DNA from: Oikopleura dioica
Lineage: Eukaryota; Animalia; Chordata
DNA: 64,000 nucleotides
Direction of reading: 5' to 3'
Assembly: GCA_907165135.1 (NCBI GenBank)
Contig: OU015569.1
Span: 5,146,001-5,210,000 of the forward strand
Below the pieces are notes generated by a model. It was not told where the DNA came from. It did no database searches and was given only the letters and a program-made list of their open reading frames with translations. Both the position numbers and the translations under genes were made by a program. Below, one piece after another: positions 6,923 through 48,408 of this stretch; the stretch's first letter is position 1, and the number at the start of each line of letters is the position of its first letter.

Positions 6923-7652
6923 ATGGAAGTCATGGCGGGCCTCACCCAAGAAGAACTGGACTTCAAAGAGCAACCCCGCAAATGGGTCTGCTCCGAAAAC
7001 TTGGCCAAAGTAAGCATTTCTGATGCAATCTTCGCTCTCTTTAGTCGATCTTCCTTTTATTTCATGCGACTTAGTGGCTGTCTAAGATGATCCTTGTTTT
7101 TTAACTATCTTTTGTTTTTAGCACATTGGCAATGCAGTGACAATTCTCTGCAAAGTCATGGAACGAGTTGATGAAAACAAGATAATCGTCTCCGATATGG
7201 TCGGCCAGATCACCTGCACGTGCAACAACGAAGAACTCTTCTTGTTCGCAGAAGTAAGGATAAAACTCATTACTGGAACATCTTTTCCCCAGGGAACACT
7301 TATCCTGGAAGCGGATGAAATCAAAGACGCTTTATTATGAAGAGGCCGCTTTAATATTCGATTAAATCTTAAGATTTAAGAATGGTTGAAAAATTCTAAG
7401 AAAATCCTCTAAATATACCGTATATATCATTGCATTATTTCAACTTATTAAAATTAAAATTAAAAAAAACATAAACTTGTTTAGAAAGACGACTATGTGC
7501 AGCTTGAAGGATGGGCATTGAGCGAGACGGAAATCCAGTGCTGTTCGCTTGAGGAGCTCAAAGACGAAGCCACCAACGACGAAACCGTCTTACTCCGCAC
7601 CAAGGCCGCGCTCATGATGGACCAGTACTCCGCTGTCGTCTACGCTCAGTAA
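6923..7652 (+). CDS. RPA3: Single OB-fold protein, replication protein A 14 kDa subunit-like (3 exons)
   Basis: PRKWVCSENLAKHIGNAVTILCKV..YVQLEGWALSETEIQCCS..C-terminal helix, matching the RPA14 layout by eye. GT-AG introns. ATG preceded by tttag|attgacatc. Confidence 0.6.
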
Positions 7653-8169
7653 AATCTCACCGCGAGCATTTTGAAAATCCGCTGAATCATTCACTGCGCG
7701 TTTTTTGGTGAATAAATCCACTGAAACCAAAAAGTTTCAAAAATTGACCCCCATCGGCTATACCAAACAGTTATCTTATGATTCATAAGTTATGAAATTC
7801 TAGGAATCAATGATTTCCTTAAAATTGTTTGACCTGCACGAAGGGTTTAATTGCGCTTCATCGTCATTTTCGTTGAAAGTATTTTCCATGTGATTGCCGG
7901 AAGGATAGTGAAGGGTAGCTACGTGCCTTGTGTCAATTAGGCGCCTTTTGAAAAAGTTTGTGATTTACGAGTTCGAAGTTCGGAACTAGTTACGATCGTT
8001 TGTTAAGGCGCCTCCCGGCCTGATCATCTCTCTGACGGCTGACTCAGACGGCTCTTTCTTCATTGCGCCGAGCTACTTTTCTTCAGAATCTAATCATAGC
8101 CCCGAGAAAGACGAGAGAAGCCATCAGAGAATCTTTAGTTAAAGTCAACTGCACCCTGCTCCCGAGAGG

Positions 8170-10682
8170 ATGGAGAAACGAGCGCAAAGAATCTCTAAAA
8201 TTATCAAAGAAGTGAATAAATTTAGGTAAGCACCGTTTTCATTCGCGTATCGCCTAATAACAAGAGGTATATAAGCAACCCATCTGAATAATACAAACAA
8301 TTCGCTTGTTCCGACTTAGTCAGGCGTTTAATTTTTAATCAGGGATTCGCACGATGTCTCCATGCATCCTGGGCTGCGGGCCCTCCTCCCGTGGATGGAC
8401 CATTCATATAATCTCCTGCTAAGCCGCCTTCAGAACTCTCCGCGCATTTTCGAAATGGCGGCCGGCAAAATCTCACGCTTCAAACTAGAATCTACCAAAA
8501 TCTCTCTCTACATTCCAAGTATGACGAAAACACCACCAAATCGTAAATTAATCGATTTTAGACCTCGACGACATTTCTGAGTCCTCCATGATTCCAATTT
8601 CAGTCACTTCGGCGGAAAGCGAGAAAATTATGCATCGCTTTGGCCTTTTTCGTGGCGCTGCCGGCGCCTCCAAGTTTGGCTTGAAAAAGTCAAAGTTCTG
8701 GATCGGCTACTTTGTGCGTTTAGTGACGGGATTTTATGAGATTTATTGTATCTTTCCCTTTGTGTGATCAAACCGCAGCTTTCCTTGCCTAGTTCGATGA
8801 CGAAAAAAATCGTTGACTAAAAATACAATAATAACCCGTTGAACAGAACAAGAACTGCTCTCTACATTAAATTGCTCGTTGTTCGTCGAGCTGACAACGA
8901 TCGAGGGAGTGCCCTTGGCCTCCGACTACGTTTCCAACTTCTCATATCATGGTGGATTCGCGAAAAAGTAAGTCCCATACCTCCGCCACTATCAAGACTA
9001 TTTATAGAGCGTTTTTCCCTGCTAAGCTTCTTGAGCAGCCACACGAGCCGGTGTTCGTGAATTTTTTCCTGAGACACGGATCAAACGACCTTTCGGAACA
9101 AATCCTAGCGGCTATGGAAAATCTAGAACACATTTGCTACGAGGTTCATCTCCTCACGCGCAAGTCCTTCAAACTAATCACGGAGCAAGAATCGACCATC
9201 GCGAAACTAAAGGAAGAGCTCGAGCAGCGCAAGAAGGAACACAAACGCAAGTTCCAAGAGCTACTCAAGGAGTCACAGAAACGTATCGAGCTCATCGAGG
9301 GCGACTCAAGAGTAAGTCTTTGGCTTCTTTTAAAATATTAATTTATAAGCTTTGCGCCTCTGAAATATAAAACACGAGCTATTTTCGAGTAAATAATGCA
9401 TCAAGCAATGCTTCTCTAAGTCACGTGATAATCTTCTGTTGTGAACGTCACCGACTTCTTTCAATTCCAATATCAAAAATAAACTTCAGTACTTGCGCCG
9501 AGAAAACGACGAACTACGACTTGAGAATGAGCTTCTACGGGATCAAGTAGCTGCTTTCGAGGCAAATCGAGAGGCAATTCTCGATTCAAAGGTGGAAACA
9601 CAGCAATTCCTTGGAGTCTCCCGCTTCGAACTTCAGCGCAAGTCACTGCCAGACAGACCTGAAAAGATACCCCTCATCGTAAAACGTACGTGCGCGACCT
9701 ATTTTTTGACTTGGCGTTTTCCGTTGCAGTCGCATGCATTTTTTAACGAAAGCTATTAAGCACCCACAACGGCAATATCATCTCGACCGCCGACGAGTGA
9801 ATCCATTTTAAATCGGATTGCGACGACGTCCGACCAAAATATCAAGGTAAGACAAACAAAATCGATACCTGTTTTCCTCCTCGGTTACATGAGATTATGC
9901 CTTAATTTGATGCACCAGTCAGCAAATTGTCTTCTCCGACAATTTATGTCGACGATAATTAACCCGCTTTGCATTAAGAATTCGGGAGCCAATTCAGACA
10001 AATGAAAATATTTGTTCTATATAGAGAATAGAATTCTTATATAACTATTTAGCCTTCGGATTTGCGCGAGCGGAATTGGGAGTTACTAGTGCGTCGAAAA
10101 TCGTTCCAAGAGCCTGGAATTCAAAAGATCAGAAAAAGGTGAATAGAAAAATATAGGTTATTCAGCACTTTTCTGTCGGTTGTTGATTTATTCCCTGGGA
10201 CATTGTTGGTTTTGCGTGTTTTAAAGTTTAACTTTGTTTTGGTTGAAGGCGAGAGAGGAAGACGGAGGAGGTGACGGCTGATCCAAGTCAAGTTGCATTA
10301 AGTGATATCGTCACTAGTGAAGGCTCAAGGGCGTCTACGCCAACCAACAGGTAACAATCATTTATTGTACATAACTATGGACATCTTGTCGATTTGTTTT
10401 CATCGAGAAATATCATGTCCAAGTTCATACAGTGCCTTCGATATCGGAAAGAAGTTCAAAGCTTTGCGCTTACATAAGTTAAGTTTACGGAGTACAGCGC
10501 CACACGAATGGGTTCGACATAAAGCCTCGCGAGTGCCCAATCAACAGGTCAAGACTGGACGAGTGCGAAGAAATTCTTCCGAAAGTTCGGCACGATCAGG
10601 ATCTCTGAGGAGGCGACCGTCGGCCAAGGGCAACAAGGGACTTATGCTTGATAAATTCAGGAGCGGTCGATGTTCTTTTTAG
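8170..10682 (+). CDS. Multi-exon coiled-coil protein of unknown function
   Basis: Consistent GT-AG exon chain from ATG 8170; heptad-rich exons at about 9030-9310 and 9493-9625; Ser/Arg-rich tail. The 3' end is uncertain. Confidence 0.5.
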
Positions 10683-10739
10683 TAATTAAGAACACTTTAT
10701 CATTAATACATTCGTTTTCGGACATTTTTTCTGTAGATT

Positions 10740-11378
10740 CAATATCAACTATTTATGTTCGCTGAAGTATTCTATTCGAAATTGCCTTTAAAGTGGTCGT
10801 TTACGGAGATGAAACAAACAACGGAGCGAAGGAAAATTTCTGGTTCCGGTCGTACAGCCGGTATCATCACACCTAGCGCTCATAAAAGAAGCTCCGATTT
10901 TAATGTTTATGTGATTATAAACTTTAACAAGTTCGAAAACGGCATTAACACATTTTAACTGGGCAAAGGACACCACCCAGGTGGACGAAGTCATAACCCA
11001 CTTGTTCTGACATAGTCTAATCCGCATCTACCCTTTCATGTTTCCAATTATTCGAAAGTCATTGATCGCCAGGCAGCGGACTAAACAACTTCCCAGAGTG
11101 GTATCGTACTTATTACAAACGCAACTTCCACGACAGCAACACCGATAGTAACTATGAAGACATAGAAGACCCCTACAAGGTGCAAAAGTGAACTTCAACT
11201 TTCATCATTATTCAAATAAATGACTGTATATGTAAAACATCGTCTATTTCCACGCTGCAAAATGTTCGCTTAGGGTTCCTGTCACACGACGGGAGCAGAG
11301 AGCGCCCTAAACAGCCTCAAGGGAGTTCCGATCCCCCATTTAACCATGCTCATCGAATCATATGCATTCAAAACTTGA
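10740..11378 (+). CDS. Probable further coding exons (tail of the previous gene or a separate gene)
   Basis: Exon-like blocks with splice sites (..NFPEWYRTYYKRNFHD..DPYK|gt; GSCHTTGAESALNSLKGVPIPHLTMLIESYAFKT*). Phases not fully resolved. Confidence 0.3.
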
Positions 11379-11445
11379 TTGTTGCTTTTGATTGAAACGA
11401 AAAAACGAGATAATGCGATTCACTCTTCTTTGCTTCTTTTTTGCT

Positions 11446-12064
11446 TCAGTAAGTGTTCAAGAGATTCCTCCACCAAAGATAGCTTTGTAAATGATTTCCG
11501 TTGTCGGCACTCAAGTCTTCATGGCTAAGGCGATTTTTCATAACTAGTACTATAATAATTGGGTTATAATTTCTATCCAATAAATCTGTCTGGAAAAATA
11601 ATAAGCGCTCTTTTAGCTGACAGCAAAAAATCTCGACTACGGAGAAGACTACGACCAATTGAAACGAGAGTCGGAAGAAATCGCCAATTTTCTGGGCACT
11701 TTCGGCGGATACATGACCAAACGCGAATTCAATTTCGATGACAATTTCTTCTGATCTGTTATTTTTAACTTATTGCGGCATTTCTGAAGGACTAAATAAA
11801 TTTCAGTCACTTTTATACGTTGTTTATTTGAGAAACTTTGGCAGTAGTTTTGCTTTCTTCGAGCAAAAAGGCGAGAGTGCAGATTTCAATGAAGAGGGCG
11901 AGTCCGAAACAAACACCAGACACGAGAATGCCTTGTTCGCGGGGAAGAGTATAGAGAAGACAGCCACCAGTGAGTAGGATGAGAGCTGCAATGAAGGATA
12001 AAACTCGTGTCGCTCTATTGCATGTGATCGAGGATCCCCTGTCTTTTCCTTGTCGAATGAACAA
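11446..12064 (-). CDS. Small multi-pass membrane protein
   Basis: Hydrophobic segments VLSFIAALILLTGGCLLYTL, ILVSGVCFGLALFIEICTLAFLL and FQLVVVFSVVEIFCC. Confidence 0.45.
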
Positions 12065-12970
12065 TGCTGCGCTTTTCTTTAGTTGATATATAAATGCCTC
12101 TTAAAAAACTGACTTCAATAAGACTCGATACCATTCCTTTGTCTTGTTCGAGGATCTCTTTCTATTAATTCTTGTATGCGCTAGACGTGCAGCAGAAAAC
12201 ATAGGCATTTCGGAGTTCTTATGGTGAGAAAAATTTCCAGAAAATTTCGTTCGGACTGAGTCTGAGATCTAACAACGCGCAAAATTTTCCGAATGGGTGA
12301 ATCCGGGGTGCCTCCGGTGCCCTATTTTCATCCCAAATTTGACAAGGGGATAACACAATAGGCTTTGTTGTTCTATTTTTACTACGCCATAAATGTTTGT
12401 CTGGAATCTTTACTCAGTTAAGTGGTATGATTTATTAGTAATAAAGTATTGCACTTGCCAAGAATTTACAAAATTGACGGTTTCCATCTGTGAAAACGGT
12501 TGTTTTAGCTATCGCCAAAAGGATTTTGCTTTTTCGTTCTCTAAAGCCGGCATACTTTGCCTCCCCAAAGAAGAACTTTGGGAGTTGAAACGGGAAAAAT
12601 ACAGCTTGGCCAAGCTGAAGAAGTTTTAATATATTATTAATTTAAAAGTGACGATTGAAGGTTTCATTGAGACGAAGACGTCTGGCGCGCGAGGTCATTG
12701 ACGGAGGTCAATTGGTGATCATCATCGTCCGCTGGGGATGACCATATTTGCTTCCTCTTTCATTAGCAACTTCACATGCCAGTCGCTCTTTGTGGAAGTG
12801 ACTGGCAATTATATTCGAGTTCTTTTTCGACCGTCTCTTCAAAAACGATCAAAGGCGACGATAATCATGCCTGACCATTTGGAGCACTGTAAGCTTAGAG
12901 AAACCTTTTCAAAATTTCAGAGATATATTAATCAGAAAATCATTTATTTTCAAAATATCTTCTTTAAAAC

Positions 12971-13327
12971 ATGCGAACGCTACAACATCATCATTCAGTG
13001 ACGCAAGTTTCAAATCCATGGAGAAATGCTTTAGGAGGAGCATTGACGGGACTATGTAAGTTTAAATCTTTGAAAAGAATAATACGTGACGGCTTTTAGA
13101 GGAATAACTGTCGATTTGTAGGCATTTTGGTTTTAATTGTTGTGATGGTGTGGTACTTACGCAGAAGAGAAGAACTAGAGAGAGCAGAGCAGAAGAAACG
13201 CGAAATTCTTTTCCAGCGTGCTGGCGAATATCTAACGGAGTACAAAAGCCGTCAGCCGGAAAAATGCCGCGATCGTGGCCGCGCACCCAGGAAAACGTTC
13301 CTCCTTGATTTCGAAATCTTTGTCTAA
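12971..13327 (+). CDS. Small single-pass membrane protein
   Basis: GT-AG splice joins ..NALGGALTGL to CILVLIVVMVWYLRRREELERAEQKKRE, a TM followed by basic residues. May start further upstream. Confidence 0.45.
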
Positions 13328-13489
13328 GTTTTTCTTTGATTGAACTTTTCGGGAACGTCTCTCGGAAGTCCGCTTTGTTGAATGTAAATATAATTCAAAC
13401 ACATCACGGGTTGCCCTATTTGCTGTCAGTTTCTAGAATAAAAGCCCTATCTGCAAGTATTGTTCTCTGTGTAATTCAGTTTTCAAGCA

Positions 13490-15084
13490 ATGTCCGATGA
13501 CAGTAACGGCTGGGAAAATAGCTCGGATGGTAAGCGAAAGGAAAAAGTCTCGCTTGACAGTATGAGAGCGTCCTTGAAGGGCCGCGTGCACCACTTATCC
13601 AATAGATGTAATCCAGAGGTCTCCGTGACAACATTTCTCCTCTTTCTATAGTCTTGGCGTCATCTTATTACACAGTGCGCTCCTCAGAAAAAATTGTGGT
13701 AATGAAATAGCCATTCAGGCAAAACTTCGGGTCATGGAAAAAGAATGAAGAAGAAGGAGAGAAAATCCGCGGGCCCCCGCTTTCTACTCAACCGCTCTGG
13801 AGTGCCCTTGTCCGAAGAAGCATGGGATCGCATGTTCACTTTCTACGCCAAAAATGATAAGCAGTTAAGATACAGTAATAATGTTTATTGCGACGATCCG
13901 CTCTTGATTTGCTTTAAGAAATCGAAGACAAAGCCAAGTATAACAAAACAAAATATCCAAGTTTACCTAAATTGAGCGCCTTGGGTGAGGAACTTTTATA
14001 TTTTCTTATGTTTATAATTAATTATTAGACAAGAACGCTCCTCGGTATGCCGAAGTATCGCTCTACCTCTGTAATATCAAAGGCTACTTTAACCAGCTTG
14101 AGGTAGACCTACTTCTATTTGTCAGACAATGAATAATTTATAGTACAATCACACAGGAACTCAAATTTTCGAAATATCGAAGCTGACGGGTTTCTCAAGG
14201 CTGATGGAAAAGGCGAAATTCATTATCCGTTGCTCGATGCCGATCAAATGTTTAGAAGCGACTGTTGTAGGAAGCGATATTTGAAGAGCACAAGGTTTAC
14301 TTCAAAGCTTGCCCATTTCACTTTTCAATCGCCCTAAAGGAATGTATCTGACTTGCTTCATTCCGAAGCTCATCCGCTTCCCGATTACTTTTAAATCCGT
14401 TTGCAATGGGCAGACTTTCTATCACATCGTGCTAGGAATCTACTACGAGGGACAACTTGGCTCTATTGGGCTCTCAAGAAGAGACGATTTAGCTGACAAG
14501 CCATTGATATACGACAGCTTGGCTGGCTTGATCCGCGAATTTCAGCGCTGCTACGCGGGTTACAGTCACAAGTTGCAGAAAGTAACAATTGGGGGACCCG
14601 TTCCCACCGATCTCACTTCACAAATTCAAGTGCAGTGGAATAGAAAAAAGTTTACTCTCAACTCAAAATGCGACTGGAACTCGATGAGCAGATTACCTCG
14701 GACCTTCAAAAGGGATCAGGTAGGGAGTAATCTCTTCCTTGATTCCAATAATTAACTTAGGAGTCATCGAGCAACGTAACCTTTGGACAACCTAGAAGTA
14801 TGGAAGCACTCCTCAGTATGATAAAGCTTGACACCACAAAGTACGCCATTCCGTCATCGCCGATGACAATACGCCCAGTCACTCAATTCACTCCAAAACG
14901 CGCTTCCCGACATTCTCTGGTTCCAAGTACCTCGCGTCTTCCTGCTGCTTATTCGAAACCAGCCGCTCGCGTCCGTATCTTCAAGTAAGCTCTTTTTATG
15001 ATTCACCAAATAATTTTAATTTAGTCGTCCTCAGCTGAGCAGTACAACGCGCATCTTTCGTCCATCGTGAACTGTCAAATTTAA
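13490..15084 (+). CDS. VASH1: Vasohibin (tubulin detyrosinase)
   Basis: YNHTGTQIFEISK..PIKCLEATVVGMYLT..RFPITFKS..FYHIVLG..GSIGLSRRDDL; catalytic Cys and His present. Needs a GA-AG intron at 14271-14339. Confidence 0.9.
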
Positions 15085-15141
15085 GGAAAATAAATAATTA
15101 TAATATCAAAAAGATTGAATTATTTTCGATGTATTTTGTAT

Positions 15142-15399
15142 TTATTTATTGGAAGACTCAAGCAGATTTGAAAGCATTCGCCTTCCCCGGTGCAAATAAT
15201 GCACATTGCACAACAAAGTGTTCATTTGTCTCTTAGAAATGTTGAAGATGCGCATCCAGACGTAGTAGTGCAGCGCGATTAGACAGCAGAACATAAGATA
15301 CGTCTTTATCAGTTTGTCGCGTATTTCAGTGCTTCGCATAAAATATGAATTTATTGTCTCTATCTCCTTCGGACTTTCGCGTTGGTACGGAGATACCAT
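15142..15399 (-). CDS. Possible small single-TM protein (85 aa)
   Basis: ATG 19 nt after a ccttag acceptor, directly downstream of the protease on the same strand; hydrophobic YLMFCCLIALHYYVWM. Confidence 0.3.
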   Translation of the reverse strand: MVSPYQRESPKEIETINSYFMRSTEIRDKLIKTYLMFCCLIALHYYVWMRIFNISKRQMNTLLCNVHYLHRGRRMLSNLLESSNK

Positions 15400-15706
15400 T
15401 AATATATTGGTTCGCAACTAAGGATGAAGAAAGCTTTTTCACGCCTCTTTGATGTTATAAATTTATGCCTTCTAAACGACCTTACGTAAAGCTATTTTTA
15501 TTCACGGTTTGTCAGGTGTCGAAGCGTTTATTTAATATTTATATAAATTCATCTCATTTATGAGATATTGAACAAAAGTACAACAGTAATTTCAGTTAAT
15601 CAGTTTGATGGTTTCATGTGGCGAAGAACATTGTGGTCAATGTTCATATTTTGATGCAAGTTTTGGTTCCTAAGCGGCGTCAAAACAAAATGCTAGAATT
15701 AGTAGC

Positions 15707-18327
15707 CTACCTAGGAACGACTGAATGCGCGGACGGATTTTTGATGATCTTGTGGATCCACTCCCTGTAATAAGCGACGTTGGTGTAGACCCCTGGGTAG
15801 ACTTTGTCCGCGCACTGCTTGCCAAAAGAGACGAGACCTGCGAGCGATTGTCGCTGAGTACGACGATCAAAGCAATCGAGCGGACCGCCACTAAAAACAA
15901 TCACTCCTAGTTGGAATCATAACCAGCCTCTCTCACCTATCTCCAATACACGCGTCAATGGCGCCAAGCTCCGCTGCACACAAATGCTGCCTTGAATGAG
16001 ATTTGATTAAAGTATTCTTTCACAAGCTTGAACTTGGCACTTACTTTCGCGTAAGTGTGACAGGACGTGTATGCGAAATCTCGCGCACGGAGGAATTTGC
16101 GTATGCTGCCCGGCAATCACTGAACTTTGTCAGTGGGACTTGGGCACGCTGGATCGTCTCACTGGAAAGCTACGGAGTTACGTGTTCATAGTTTGTTGAC
16201 TACCTGAAGCGGGCGCCAGGCTCAGAAGACGTACGTCCCCAACCAGTGATGTAGCAACTGTCCCTGACCTTGAGAGAGTCGACAGCGCGCGGCATGCAAA
16301 TAGGGCCCGTTTCCATGTCAAACTTGAAGCACTTGCCCGTGTGGTCTGGTTTCAACTGAATCAAGGCGATGTCATTGTTTGCTGCTCCTGTTCTAAACAT
16401 TCCCTCACATATATTTTTGCGCACTTAACTTACTCAGAAATGACTTGAAAGTTTTCGTGAACAAAAATGTCCTTCACATCAATAGCCTTTCGCGGATTTA
16501 AACTTTAAATTTTAAAGTGAGTGTTAATATCAATCTGAAATTTAATAAATGGCTTCTTATCTATGCATTTTACTCCGATCCTGTGCGTTAATCTCGTCGT
16601 CACCTTCTTTGTTGAATCTTCCGCTGCGTACTTGAAACGTGCCGCGCTCGACTGCAGCTTGAATAGTGCGCGCGTTTGAGCTTCTGTCACTGACCATCAA
16701 GCAATGCGCAGCAGTGATGACCCAGCAACTTCCGATAATTGAGGCGCCACATGCATGCTGTCCACGGGTGTGATCCGCAAAAGTCTGTGGCTTCGAATAG
16801 GCGATCTGAGCCATCCAAGGATGGTTGCATGGCTTTGACGTCGTCGCGCCGATGATGCGACTCTGGCAGTTAGAACGACCACAGTATCTTTCTGCATCCA
16901 GAAGCTCGTTCAGATCAGATTCTTAAGATTTTTAAGCTTGAATTTCTTTCCGACGAATCTTTCTGATCCGGTGAACATGCAAAAATATGCTCGGTACGTG
17001 GCTTTATAGAAAGATTCCGTCACACTGTCCCATACCTATTTCATCCTCTGGAATGTTAATCCCGTCTTCGGCACAGCGGGGAAGTGCGCAGTACTCCCAC
17101 TTTCGCTCTGGGTCTGAAATTCGCAAAGAGGATTAGATTACGTTGCTCTGTTCTCTGTTACCTGTCGTGTAGCACCACGGTAGCTGCTCGTTTTCACCGA
17201 GGACGTGGCATCGAGCTCCAGCTTGGTTCGGAAAAGGAGGAAGAATCAACGGTTTGTGAGGCGTGGTTGTATTCCATGCCTGACAAGGAATACCAGTTAC
17301 AGTCCGTTCTGCATGTTCCAGTGATCCAGAGCGACATGGTCGCGCGCGCACTACAACGAGCTGGTAAAAAAGGAACGTACACTTAGTCTGTGACTTTTTA
17401 TGTACCTTCACAAATAAGTTCTCGTTTGAGACCTTTGTTGATTTCATGCTGTCGCGCGAAGAATTTCCACTCCCCGTTTCTTGTCAGCCAGGGATATCGC
17501 CCGATGTTGTGATTTTCACGGATCGATTTTTTCAACAAACGATTCATTTTGAATGTCATTTTGTTGAACTTGAGCGGGGCTTGCAAATAATCACTCTTGT
17601 CATTTATGCCATTTAATTTACATGTCTTTCAAGCCCTAACAAAAGTGGACGGCCACCAAGGCCATGCACGGTTCTTGAAGTGAGATAGGTTCTGTTCCGT
17701 TCAGCTCCAATCCATGCGTTTTTGCCGCGCTTCTCTACAAGCAGTTGAACGAGAAATTGGTTCTCCCGCTCGTTTTGCGGCAAAGCTACTCGCGCTATTC
17801 TGTTTCCAATTGATTCATCGTCGCAGACTCTTTTTACTGTTAGTGTTACAACTAATTTAAAGTGAAGGCATTCAATTGATTTGGTTGTTCCAAATGTCAA
17901 CTTTTAGTTTATGGCAGAAATCTAACAATTCCCTATGAGCCTGTTCAACTGTGTATTGGCCTCTCATTTTTGCATAGCATTTTGTCCCAGGATCTTCTAA
18001 TAGAAACCAATTCCCATCTGAACGAATCTATCAGTAATTCGGAGTCCCTTGAGTTTATGTTTTATTATGTTGATTTACGCCTGATTGACCTTAGTCAATT
18101 ATTGTTCCTGCTTTACAAATTTTATGAAACGTAACATTCCACAGTACATAGCTCATATGTAATCCATTATTCTAGCTCCTTTATTCAGATTAGCAATGAG
18201 TATTCAGTCCACATCATGTAAAAATATGTGGATTTATACCTGGACATCGTCTGGAGCGAACTTGTGCTTGAATTGTGCTGAGTTGGAGGTAGACAATAAA
18301 TGTGATGAATGTGGCCTTCGAGAACAT
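15707..18327 (-). CDS. Secreted mosaic serine protease: signal peptide, C-type lectin-like, kringle, trypsin domain
   Basis: Signal [21 protein letters not shown]; lectin motifs [20 protein letters not shown]; kringle [20 protein letters not shown]; activation R|IIG; triad TAAHC, NDIAL, DACIGDSGGP (split by an intron). Confidence 0.85.
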
Positions 18328-44444: not shown

Positions 44445-45298
44445 CGCGACCGGGCAAAATATTTATTCATCACGAGCTGAGCGATGAAAAATCAAATATA
44501 ATTTCGTCAAGACTGATAAAGCACCGTTTACTTACGGAATATAAAGTGTTGGATTTGGCAGGAGTAATGTCTTAGGCTGAAATAGATTTTTATCAATTGA
44601 AATCATGGAAGACTACTAAATTCGATGTGCTTACTCGAGGACGACGCTTGAGGATAATGACATCTTCTTTTGGGCAGCCCATGGGGTGAGCGTTGCAAAA
44701 TGCCCCAAGGCGAATGCTTCGAGGGAGAACTAGCGCGCAAATTTTGACCAGCTAAATAATTTTAAAGCTATGTATCGTTATATTTTCACGGCGAGACCTG
44801 GTTTCTCCTTTTTCTAGACATTTTTTATAAATAAACCGGTCAAGATCCTTTGCCTTAGACCGAAAGAGAGGGTTTAAGAAAATTGAATTACCTTAGAAAG
44901 TCTTCGTTTTCTCTAGTTGCGTTTTGCGTATATGCATTTCTCGCAGCTCAATTCTCTATTCGTAAATTGACAGGCGCGTGTGCTCGTTCGTCCCGCGCTG
45001 TCGAGTGATAATGGCAACTGTAGTATGGCTACACTGGGTCGATTCTCTTTGGGAAGGAAAATCGACCTGCTGCTCTTTTTGCGTTTTTTGATTAGCGAGG
45101 CGAAGGGGGCCACTCTCCGCCGCCAGCTCAGCCATCGCCATCGATCGTGCAAGTATTTAATTTTAAAAAAGGAAAGCCTCAATAATGCAGCCGCCAGGGA
45201 GGATGTAACGTGTCCCCACCGGTTGACTCTCAGAATATTCATACAAAGGACACCTCGCTATGCAAACTACGGTAAACGACAGTGATCGGTCTTTTATT

Positions 45299-48200
45299 TT
45301 ATTGCTCTGGAAAAGGCTCAAATTCTTCGTAATAGTCATCCGGCTCAGCGTTGATTGTCTTGGTATATCTGCATCTGAAAAAGCCTGTATTGATCTTTAT
45401 TTTTGGTGTTAGAGTAATACTTGTTAGTGTGCATTGAAGACTCGACGCAAAAGTTAATGTTGCAAGAAATGTCCATGTTGTATTCTTCTATTCCCTGGTT
45501 GAAGACAAACGATCTCAGGTCGAGTTTTAACGGGAATAAAAATAATTTCTATTTGATGTGAAAACTCCATTCCTAAACGAAAATCGAAGCTCACGCTTTG
45601 CGAAAACACTAGGCGATCGCAACTTGGTACTTGTAAGTCGGCTTCCTCGCCCGTTCCAAACGATGTCATAGTATTTTGGGTCCGGTACATCTCGCTCAGA
45701 TACTCGGCAATTCTTTCAAGTTTCATTATTCTTTGATTATTAAACCATATTGTGATTTTTGCCAAAGCCAATAAATTTCAAAATTAAGAAACCTTCCTGG
45801 GCATAAAACACCACTGGGGAAGCAAGAGTCAATCCAATATCCCAGACTATTTTGAAATATATATTCCTCCCAATAGACATTGACCTGCTGGTGTCTTGTA
45901 AGTCTACTTGTTTCTTAAGGATATAAGCTATGAATTTGAACTTTCGTAGCGCCTAAATGCGTTGTAGGATCATTTTCATTTCAAAAGCAATCCTACCTAA
46001 AAATGCACGCAAGACTCAAATATGGTATTTTTAAAAAAAATTTTATTGAAAATTTTCCTTTTAGAGCGATTTCAAATCTTACTCTCTCGATTTCTCGAAA
46101 TTTTTCCATTGCATCGCTAAAACTAAACCGTGTCTTTTATTTCGATGATGTTAAGCTAGAAAATTGACGGGCTTTTATTTCGAAAATCTTTCGAATTTTT
46201 ATTCTAGCGTTTTCCTCTTTCTTGCTCGTGTTTTTCTTCTTTTTGTGCTTTTTCGCTTGCAACCAATCAAAGCGCTACGCTCAACCGCGCCACTCTCACG
46301 GAAAAGAGGAGTCGAGAGAGCGAGCGCCCAGCGCGCCGCTTTTTACACTATTCGCGCGCTTGGTAAGCCTCATGAAAATGGCTCTAAAATCGGTTTCGGT
46401 CGGAATTAGGAAAAACTGATCCGTCAATTTTGTAGATAAGGGTTAAGAGAAGTTATTTATCGAAAAAACTGGACCGATTTAGTGGAAAAAATTCGAGGAA
46501 TCGAGAGAGTAAGATTTTAAATCGCTCTAAAAGGAAAATTTTCAATAAAATTTTTTTTAAAAGTACCATATTTGAGTTTTGCGTGCATTTTTAGGTAGGA
46601 ATACTTTTGAAGTGAAAATGATCCTACTTCGCATTTAGGCGCTACGAAAGTTCAAATTCATAGCTTATATCCTTAAATGCAGCCGTTTCATAGATCACAA
46701 TCTCCGGTCGCGTTTCGAATCTCGAGCTTTCTTCAAAAAGACCATTGCTGAAGTCACGTGTGACGATCTGAAATTTTATGCAAAAAATTTAAAAGTTTAT
46801 TTAAAAGTACCATTCCAATGTTTCTACCCCCAAGTTCTCTTGTTCGTTTATAGACGCGAACTTCGTTTGAGAACGAGCACATAAAACTCAACCTATGGCT
46901 GAGATGGAAGTTCTGAATAAAATCCCCTTCGGGAGTTGGTTTTTCAAGGTCAATCGACATCAAGAAGCTGATTTGTTTGTCTGAGACGATCATTTCCATT
47001 CCACAGTCGTCCAAGGGAATGTCGAATTGTAGGAATTGATTGTATATGTCCAGAGTTTTCATTTTAGGACCATTTGGTTTCGGATTGATTGTACCGTTAT
47101 GCGCCTCTACCGTGCACTCATTCAAAGAAGAGTCCATTTCGTTGATTCTTGTCGCGTTATTGAGAATGAATGTTGCCGCCTTACCATTGGAATCAACAAC
47201 GCCAGGATTTTCAAAAGCGTCTTTTCTGACCTTTACCGTCATGTACGTGGGGTTGCAGCTGAGTTCGACGCATTGGGGATTTTCGATTATGCATTCGTAC
47301 TTTCCACTCTCTCGCAGTTTTGCCGACCAACATCCAGTAGTACTTTGAAGTTCTTTTTCCGTTTTTCGATCGAATACGGAGTTGGGCCCGTATGAATTCC
47401 CTTGGCAAGTAGGAAATGACTGTGCGGAGCGAATCGCCGAGTGATAAACTTCTCTGACGGTTCGTTTCTAAAAAGATCGGAGTTTTTCTATTCAACCTGT
47501 CTTTCTGTACCGTGTAGTCTTTTTCCGATGGTGCCTTTTTAGGGAGCACATGCCTTTTACTGGTTCTTTGTTTTTATAAGTAAAAGCGTGGCACTCATTG
47601 CCAGGATAATCTTGGCACTCTTTTCCGCAATCATAAAATGACTTGACGTACTTCTCAACAAGATCGTTTCCGAGAATGTATGTGTCCTCGAAGTTCCAGT
47701 ACGGATTCGAGCCAATAAAAGTCTGCACTTTGTTTCCAGATGGCTCAAATAAGCTTCTTGCATTCGACATCCCTCGAAGCAATTTTTCTACAAGATCGTT
47801 TCTGTCGACTTCCCCGTAATTCCCATTGAAGCGAGGAATTGCAGTCTTAGCGACAAAATTGTTGATCTGTTCGGAATCAAACGGCCGTTGTTCCCTTTGT
47901 GCACGAGTAATAGTGTCATTCGCAATTACTTCATCTTAAAATTTGAGTTTTAACGAATCGAGCCCTCAATTTACTTCTTGTACCTTGCGGAAGTTTTTCG
48001 TAAAGAGTCATTCTCGGCAAATCAATGTTGAAATCTGCACATTCCGGAACAAGGCTCTCGAATTCTTTGTCCAGGTTGCAATTGACGTGTGAGATTTTTA
48101 TCTCATCCGCAATGTTCTTTCTCCAGGAGTCTACGTATCGAATTTTGTAGTCTGCAATTGTCATGATTTCGTTCATTTGAGGGCAGTTTTTGCAAAGATT

Positions 48201-48408
48201 CGAAGCGACGTAGACCAGGCAAAGATATCTCCCATCCTTAATTTGTTCTTTAGAATCATTCAATCCCAATAGATTCAACCTCTAAGCAATCGATCAAAGA
48301 TTCAGGATCTGTCCACTGTATCTCGCTCTGCTCTACAAACTGCACGCCATGGGTGTTGAAGAAAAAGCATAAAATCAGGGATATATGCAGTAGTTTTAGT
48401 TCGATCAT
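45299..48408 (-). CDS. Secreted thioredoxin-like + PAN/Apple + ZP-domain protein
   Basis: Signal MIELKLLHISLILCFFFNTHG; CKNC motif; PAN CGKECQDYPGNECHAFTY..CSLK; ZP-N LSCNPTYMTVKV..IPLDDCG..FMCSF; ZP-C IYFKIVW..CRV..YYDIVWNGC..SFVF..DISCNINFAC. Confidence 0.8.
45919..46672. mobile_element. Long-TIR MITE with TTAA target duplication and GG..CC termini (Kolobok-type)
   Basis: About 190-bp inverted arms, first 43 bp identical (GGATATAAGCTATGAATTTGAACTTTCGTAGCGCCTAAATGCG); TTAA at 45915-45918 and 46673-46676; no transposase-like ORF. Confidence 0.92.

Follow-up and report, generated by a model that had tools for sequence, protein, structure and literature searches.

A Kolobok-like MITE segregating within an Oikopleura dioica coding exon: probable gene disruption or candidate GA-AG intron

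Introduction

Introns born from transposons have been documented in algae, in protists and in the larvacean Fritillaria. The formation of such an intron by means of the transposon's own target-site duplication (TSD) is a known concept (Huff 2016; Henriet 2019; Gozashti 2022). In introners, the TSD is co-opted as one of the splice sites (Huff 2016, as summarised in PMC11282704). In the larvacean Fritillaria borealis, MITE-derived introns are non-canonical and are removed by the U2 spliceosome (Henriet 2019, as summarised in the same paper). Neither tunicates nor Oikopleura are mentioned in the main text of Gozashti 2022. The literature covered here, with Denoeud 2010 and Henriet 2019 themselves outside it, holds no record of a transposon-born intron in Oikopleura.

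The introns of Oikopleura dioica are short, with a median length of 49 nt (PMC8008620), and three-quarters of them are lineage-specific (PMC4122922). Non-GT/AG introns make up 11-12% of the total and are enriched 3-fold among new introns (PMC8008620; PMC4122922). GA-AG boundaries are found in a few per cent of introns and are likewise enriched among the new ones (PMC7072748; PMC4122922). GA-AG introns of this species have a conserved exonic AG before the GA and an A at position +3 (PMC7072748). The origin of the lineage-specific introns, among which GA-AG is enriched, has been described as unresolved, and reverse splicing has been proposed (PMC4122922).

This report concerns one MITE in a coding exon of O. 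dioica. It lies in a stretch of 64,000 nucleotides, referred to throughout as the window. Introns of 43-49 nt in the host gene and matches in marine metagenomes are in line with this species. The insertion is polymorphic, which is a new result for this locus. It is read here, with modest confidence, as a young insertion that probably breaks its host gene. Its ends are also laid out in such a way that it could be removed precisely as an intron, and the case for and against that possibility is weighed below.

The Host Gene

The interrupted gene lies on the minus strand, and its predicted product is a fast-evolving, secreted protein with a PAN and a ZP-N domain. Exons 1 and 2 (47984..48408) would encode a signal peptide from the ATG at 48408 and then a Cys-rich N-terminal part; they are separated by a GT-AG intron of 43 nt (48237-48279). 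The PAN domain is encoded by exon 3 (47497..47934) and the putative ZP-N domain by exon 4 (46811..47451), which in the wild alleles described below has its acceptor 2 nt upstream and starts at 47453. The MITE divides exon 5. The upstream part (46672..46767) ends in ...IVIYETAAFK; the G that closes it already belongs to the MITE, as the element's first base. It had been annotated at first pass as a 32-codon exon from 46767 to 46672, and 32 open codons were found there. The downstream part (45797..45913) reads KQVDLQDTSRSMSIGRNIYFKIVW... and has its 3' end at 45797, 45794 or 45793, depending on the donor. With GT-AG introns of 43, 49, 45 and 43 nt, the model gives a single open frame that starts at the ATG at 48408 and runs for 519 codons until it meets the MITE. 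Beyond the element, the frame of the window allele stays open across three tentative exons (45712-45566, 45494-45421 and 45374-45302, which span 45302..45712) to a TAA at 45302-45304, and an AATAAA follows.

The PAN_1 match is clear (E = 6e-8). The ZP-N match covers the whole profile with 24.2 bits (E = 4e-5), slightly below the cutoff of 24.7. An open ZP-C exon had also been proposed on the far side of the element. This part is indeed open from 45913, but neither the interrupted exon nor the later exons match ZP-C among the Pfam and Atlas profiles.

Two introns of the model deserve comment. Intron 4 (46768-46810, 43 nt, GT-AG) is hypervariable, with 10-12 differences from the wild contigs, including a 2-nt indel, whereas its flanking exons differ by about 1%; this disparity supports the exon model. 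A GG donor for the same intron was rejected, since a canonical 43-nt intron (ATG/GTACTT...TTTCAG; slashes mark exon boundaries) fits and the very high divergence confirms that the sequence is non-coding. Three models fit the intron after exon 5 (45713-45796): GA-AG (CAG/GAAGGT..., in agreement with the AG/GAA consensus), GG-AG, and GT-AG, the last with another acceptor. This intron, which lies 116 nt downstream of the MITE, may be non-canonical and native to the gene.

Across the exons, the window differs from the wild alleles by about 1.2%, with 8 synonymous and 8 non-synonymous changes. Only 7 homologues of the gene were matched among 1.84 billion representative proteins. Together, the few homologues and the equal numbers of changes point to modest constraint. 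No annotated or transcript-derived protein across the junction was found in the protein collections, which gave only a genomic fragment of 151 aa (P0001) and weak fragments. A 127-aa fragment (P0002) from a Logan contig of run DRR498525 is 56% identical to the ZP-N exon and is probably a homologue from another Oikopleura lineage or species.

The Element

The MITE (45919..46672, no strand assigned) is 754 bp long, with tips GG..CC and a GC content of 36%. It is flanked by two copies of a TTAA TSD, at 45915..45918 and 46673..46676. Where the insertion is lacking, a single TTAA(G) stands in place of the two. The terminal inverted repeat (TIR) arm at 45919..46116 pairs with the arm at 46475..46672. 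The first 43 nt from the tip are perfect, and 13 mismatches then follow up to about 198 nt. When the TTAA is counted, the repeat search returns arms of 202 nt (45915-46116 and 46475-46676) with 94% complementarity. The ends read GGATATAAGC at one tip and GCTTATATCC at the other, with TTAA on either side. A 27-nt terminal pattern of the element occurs at just 2 sites in the 64 kb window, which are the two tips, against a chance expectation of 0.

On the minus strand, the insertion site reads ...GCT GCA TTT AAG/GATATAAGC ... GCTTATATCC TTAAG/AAA CAA GTA. In longer context, it reads ...GAA ACG GCT GCA TTT AAG/GATATAAGCTATG ... CATAGCTTATATCC TTAAG/AAA CAA GTA GAC. The first-pass annotation had placed a MITE inside the coding region of a minus-strand gene at this very sequence, and the sequence at the site is exactly as it had been given there.

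No protein domain (Pfam) or RNA family (Rfam) was found inside the MITE, which is therefore non-autonomous. Searches with the open reading frames that it carries gave no homologues and no exact records. Within the window, no autonomous partner encoding a Kolobok DDD/E transposase was found, and a scan of the 64 kb found no other TTAA-flanked TIR element. Kolobok and piggyBac elements are told apart by the TTAA duplication together with 5'-RR..YY-3' termini (PMC9587614). The MITE combines a 4-bp TTAA TSD, RR..YY tips (GG..CC), TIRs, a lack of coding capacity and many copies, and it is classed as Kolobok-like by its end signature alone. The earlier recognition of a Kolobok signature in the TTAA duplication and purine-purine termini agrees with both the published distinction and the GG..CC tips. 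A piggyBac-derived MITE was considered and rejected: the TSD is TTAA, but the tips are RR..YY and not piggyBac ends.

Within the unique core of the MITE lies a GC-rich stretch (46280-46370) that contains GCGCGC motifs and an inverted CCAAT box (ATTGG), in contrast to the AT-rich arms. This stretch matches nothing in Rfam or Pfam and may represent a promoter-like piece captured by the element.

The family to which the MITE belongs is abundant and looks recently active. In a DNA run (X4), the summed word depth of the family is 7,000-17,000, compared with 82 in the flanks. From word depth relative to single copy, the family is estimated at about 100-200 copies of at least 90% identity. Within the window there is one copy. 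An exact TIR scan of JGI metagenomes gave a single match, a chance 20-mer. Internal-deletion derivatives of the family exist elsewhere in the X4 genome, where contigs join 46000/46001 to 46438.

Insertion Polymorphism

The insertion is recent and not fixed. The exon is uninterrupted in other individuals and in contigs from wild populations, which belong to the same lineage (about 98% identity). Run X4 yielded a contig of 4622 nt, at a single-copy depth of 82.9, that joins 45913 directly to 46672; it skips 758 nt, with 5 letters (TTAAG) ambiguous in placement. Two Tara Oceans metagenome contigs (L001 and L002), 98% identical to the window where they align, likewise pass from 46672 straight to 45918, and their aligned parts overlap by 5 nt. 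Both also encode the ZP-N exon at 99% (P0001). Several SNPs distinguish X4 from L001, which are therefore distinct haplotypes. The empty site was thus found in every other sample inspected (X4, L001 and L002), and from these three alleles it follows that the insertion is young and segregating. It follows likewise that the exon was ancestrally uninterrupted and that the TSD is exactly TTAA. What the filled allele has in addition to the empty one is 4 bp plus the element, 758 nt in all.

A search for empty-site alleles in other populations had been suggested in the first-pass annotation; three such alleles were found. The same annotation had inferred a recent event from the near-identical arms. 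Its recency is borne out by the insertion polymorphism, but the similarity of the arms is no clock for TIR elements.

A second lesion is possible on the MITE haplotype. Exon 3 contains a run of five A residues (47536..47540, minus strand) where X4, L001 and L002 have six. In the wild allele, A6 goes with an intact frame and a third intron of 43 nt (GT...CAG). With A5 and the wild-type CAG acceptor, the frame shifts, and only an AG located 2 nt further downstream restores it. Two explanations fit the A5 run: the MITE haplotype truly has a frameshift there, or the Nanopore (long-read) assembly has a homopolymer error. If the frameshift is real, the MITE haplotype is likely a null allele.

Splice Geometry and Transcript Data

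On the minus strand, the stretch 45914..46671 (758 nt) has the form of a hypothetical scarless GA..AG intron. It is the stretch missing from the empty-site alleles, and its register is ambiguous over the 5 nt of TTAAG. When 45914-46671 is removed, GCATTTAAGAAACAAG is restored, which is identical to the sequence of the three empty-site alleles. It had been claimed that excision as a GA-AG intron would recover the exact pre-insertion sequence; as geometry this holds, and the product is that of real alleles. In terms of geometry only, the layout AAG/GA...CCTTAAG/ is that of an introner, with scarless removal, one splice site from the element and the other from the TSD and flank. The further claim that the element must land in the sense direction falls away. 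The two ends share their 43 terminal bases, so that either orientation serves as long as a G follows the TTAA on the coding strand, a coincidence with a chance of about 1 in 4.

The putative intron has features that speak for splicing and others that speak against it. The donor, AAG/GAT, has the AG/GA and the intron has the terminal AG, but position +3 is T. The acceptor of the element, CCTTAAG/, is like the native acceptors ATTAAG/ of intron 1 and TTTAAG/ of intron 2. The native donors (GTTGAA, GTACAA and GTACTT) match U1 no better past the GT. At 758 nt, the putative intron is more than 15 times longer than introns 1-4 of the host gene (43-49 nt). In the predicted RNA fold (-379 kcal/mol, z = -28), the donor, the acceptor and any branch site would be paired within a stem of about 200 bp. 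Read-through of the unspliced MITE would reach a stop 10 codons into the element (...AAFKDISYEFELS, then stop), with the loss of about 135 C-terminal residues.

Three oligo-dT RNA runs from 2026 with the same species label (X15-X17) gave 0, 8 and 0 reads, none of them on the exons of the gene. The 8 reads of X16 lie partly on 45100-45216 and 45451-45567, at 90-95% identity and with long unrelated tails, and they probably come from a repeat or paralogue and not from the host gene. Since the empty allele segregates, a read joining 46672 to 45913 proves splicing only if it comes from a genotyped carrier.

Competing Explanations

How is the filled allele best explained? The reading preferred here, which we hold to be somewhat better than an even bet, is that the young Kolobok-like MITE insertion, which still segregates in this coding exon, probably breaks the gene. 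A MITE of a high-copy, TTAA-duplicating family transposed recently into the TTAAG of exon 5, and on the window haplotype it most likely disrupts the gene rather than giving it an efficient new intron. The filled allele would persist as a young, low-frequency variant, probably recessive or nearly neutral, in a rapidly evolving and perhaps dispensable gene, and would have been captured because the assembly represents one individual. This reading agrees with the empty site in all other samples, with the stop that read-through meets after 10 codons, and with the almost complete lack of detectable homologues and the 8/8 changes, which speak for modest constraint on the gene. The T at +3, the length and the enclosure of the splice sites in the stem also argue for it, as does the A5 run, with which the frame is lost if the wild-type CAG acceptor is used, although that run may be a Nanopore homopolymer error. 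In the rival interpretation, the permissive U2-type spliceosome of O. dioica precisely removes 46671..45914 as a GA-AG intron. The donor would come from the MITE tip (AAG/GA) and the acceptor from the duplicated TTAA and the flanking G; carriers would make wild-type mRNA, and the insertion, nearly neutral, would be an introner-like intron gain observed at a polymorphic stage. We regard this as possible but doubtful. The scarless geometry is confirmed and its product is a real empty allele; AG/GA fits the exonic AG plus GA of the GA-AG introns that O. dioica uses (PMC7072748); the TTAAG/ acceptor resembles two native ones, and native donors are also poor U1 matches. The share of non-GT/AG introns and their enrichment among new introns (PMC8008620; PMC4122922) are in keeping with it, as are the MITE-derived non-canonical introns of Fritillaria borealis and TSD co-option as an established introner mechanism (both as summarised in PMC11282704). 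Against it stand the T in place of A at +3, the length of 758 nt, the very stable duplex that would enclose both splice sites and the branch region, and the roughly 1-in-4 chance of a G after TTAA, a geometry for which first-pass annotations are themselves selected. All other samples carry empty alleles, and the MITE haplotype may have a frameshift. No junction reads came from the three RNA runs, which lacked coverage of the gene and so make no case against splicing, and no transcript-derived protein came from the protein collections. The downstream exons are still open, but in a young insertion this is uninformative.

Processing of the carrier allele through other sites, which would give an in-frame but altered protein, appears improbable. 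A GT donor in the upstream part of exon 5 (AATG/GTCTTT) could be joined to an acceptor in the downstream part (AAACAAG/TA), with about 26 residues lost; ATT/GTGATC could be joined to TTAAG/, with 9 residues lost; or the whole enlarged exon 5 could be skipped. Phase-compatible GT and AG pairs do lie on both sides of the MITE, and O. dioica defines introns over short distances, so that an exon of 971 nt with the MITE would be abnormal. Skipping would keep the frame under two non-GT donor models, in which exon 5 without the MITE measures 213 or 216 nt, a multiple of 3, but not under the GT-donor model, in which it measures 217 nt, and the 3' boundary is itself uncertain. The cryptic donors, moreover, have a context no better than that of the GA site. 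Least credible by far is an assembly artefact, that is, a long-read mis-join that placed a MITE carried by no individual. The empty site in every other sample and a homopolymer difference typical of long-read assemblies would accord with such an error, but the perfect 4-bp TTAA duplication that borders this complete TIR element exactly at its tips is what transposition leaves behind, not a mis-join. In addition, several DNA runs contain 72-80% of the words sampled from the stretch, compared with 66% in the empty-site run X4.

Significance and Comparison with Known Systems

What would follow from each outcome? Tentatively, the locus could show an animal intron at the moment of its gain: a Kolobok-type MITE that landed in TTAAG would be excised from the outset, and with precision, as a GA-AG intron, perhaps with help from its terminal hairpin. 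If so, such insertions would be one source of the unexplained excess of GA-AG among young O. dioica introns, an excess for which reverse splicing has been the explanation to date. If the MITE is not spliced, the locus simply shows a member of an active MITE family that breaks a gene and still segregates. The locus offers both a filled allele, in the assembly, and an empty allele, in another individual and in ocean metagenomes.

The MITE shares with non-autonomous elements of the Kolobok superfamily the TTAA-specific 4-bp TSD, the GG..CC termini and the TIRs; its class is assigned from its ends. Introners of Micromonas and Aureococcus (Huff 2016; Gozashti 2022) are likewise multi-copy, non-autonomous DNA transposons with TIRs and a TSD. 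As in introners, one splice site here could be the element's own and the other could come from the duplicated target and its flank, so that removal would be scarless. Unlike introners, the MITE is far longer, with arms of about 200 nt, its donor would be GA and not GT or GC, and its splicing is hypothetical. The MITE introns of Fritillaria borealis also belong to a larvacean that lacks a minor spliceosome; they too have TIRs and TSDs, and their non-GT boundaries are tolerated by the U2 spliceosome. Their boundaries are mostly AG-AC or AG-AT at a TAC target, whereas those at this locus would be GA-AG at TTAAG. Moreover, the Fritillaria introns are fixed and verified by RNA, whereas the insertion described here is polymorphic and its intron status is putative. 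Ordinary exonic transposon insertions that segregate as loss-of-function alleles are similarly young and polymorphic, with a premature stop on read-through; here, the empty allele predominates among the samples examined. The insertion in exon 5 differs from these in its ends, which happen to be compatible with scarless removal as a GA-AG intron, a type of intron that the species does use.
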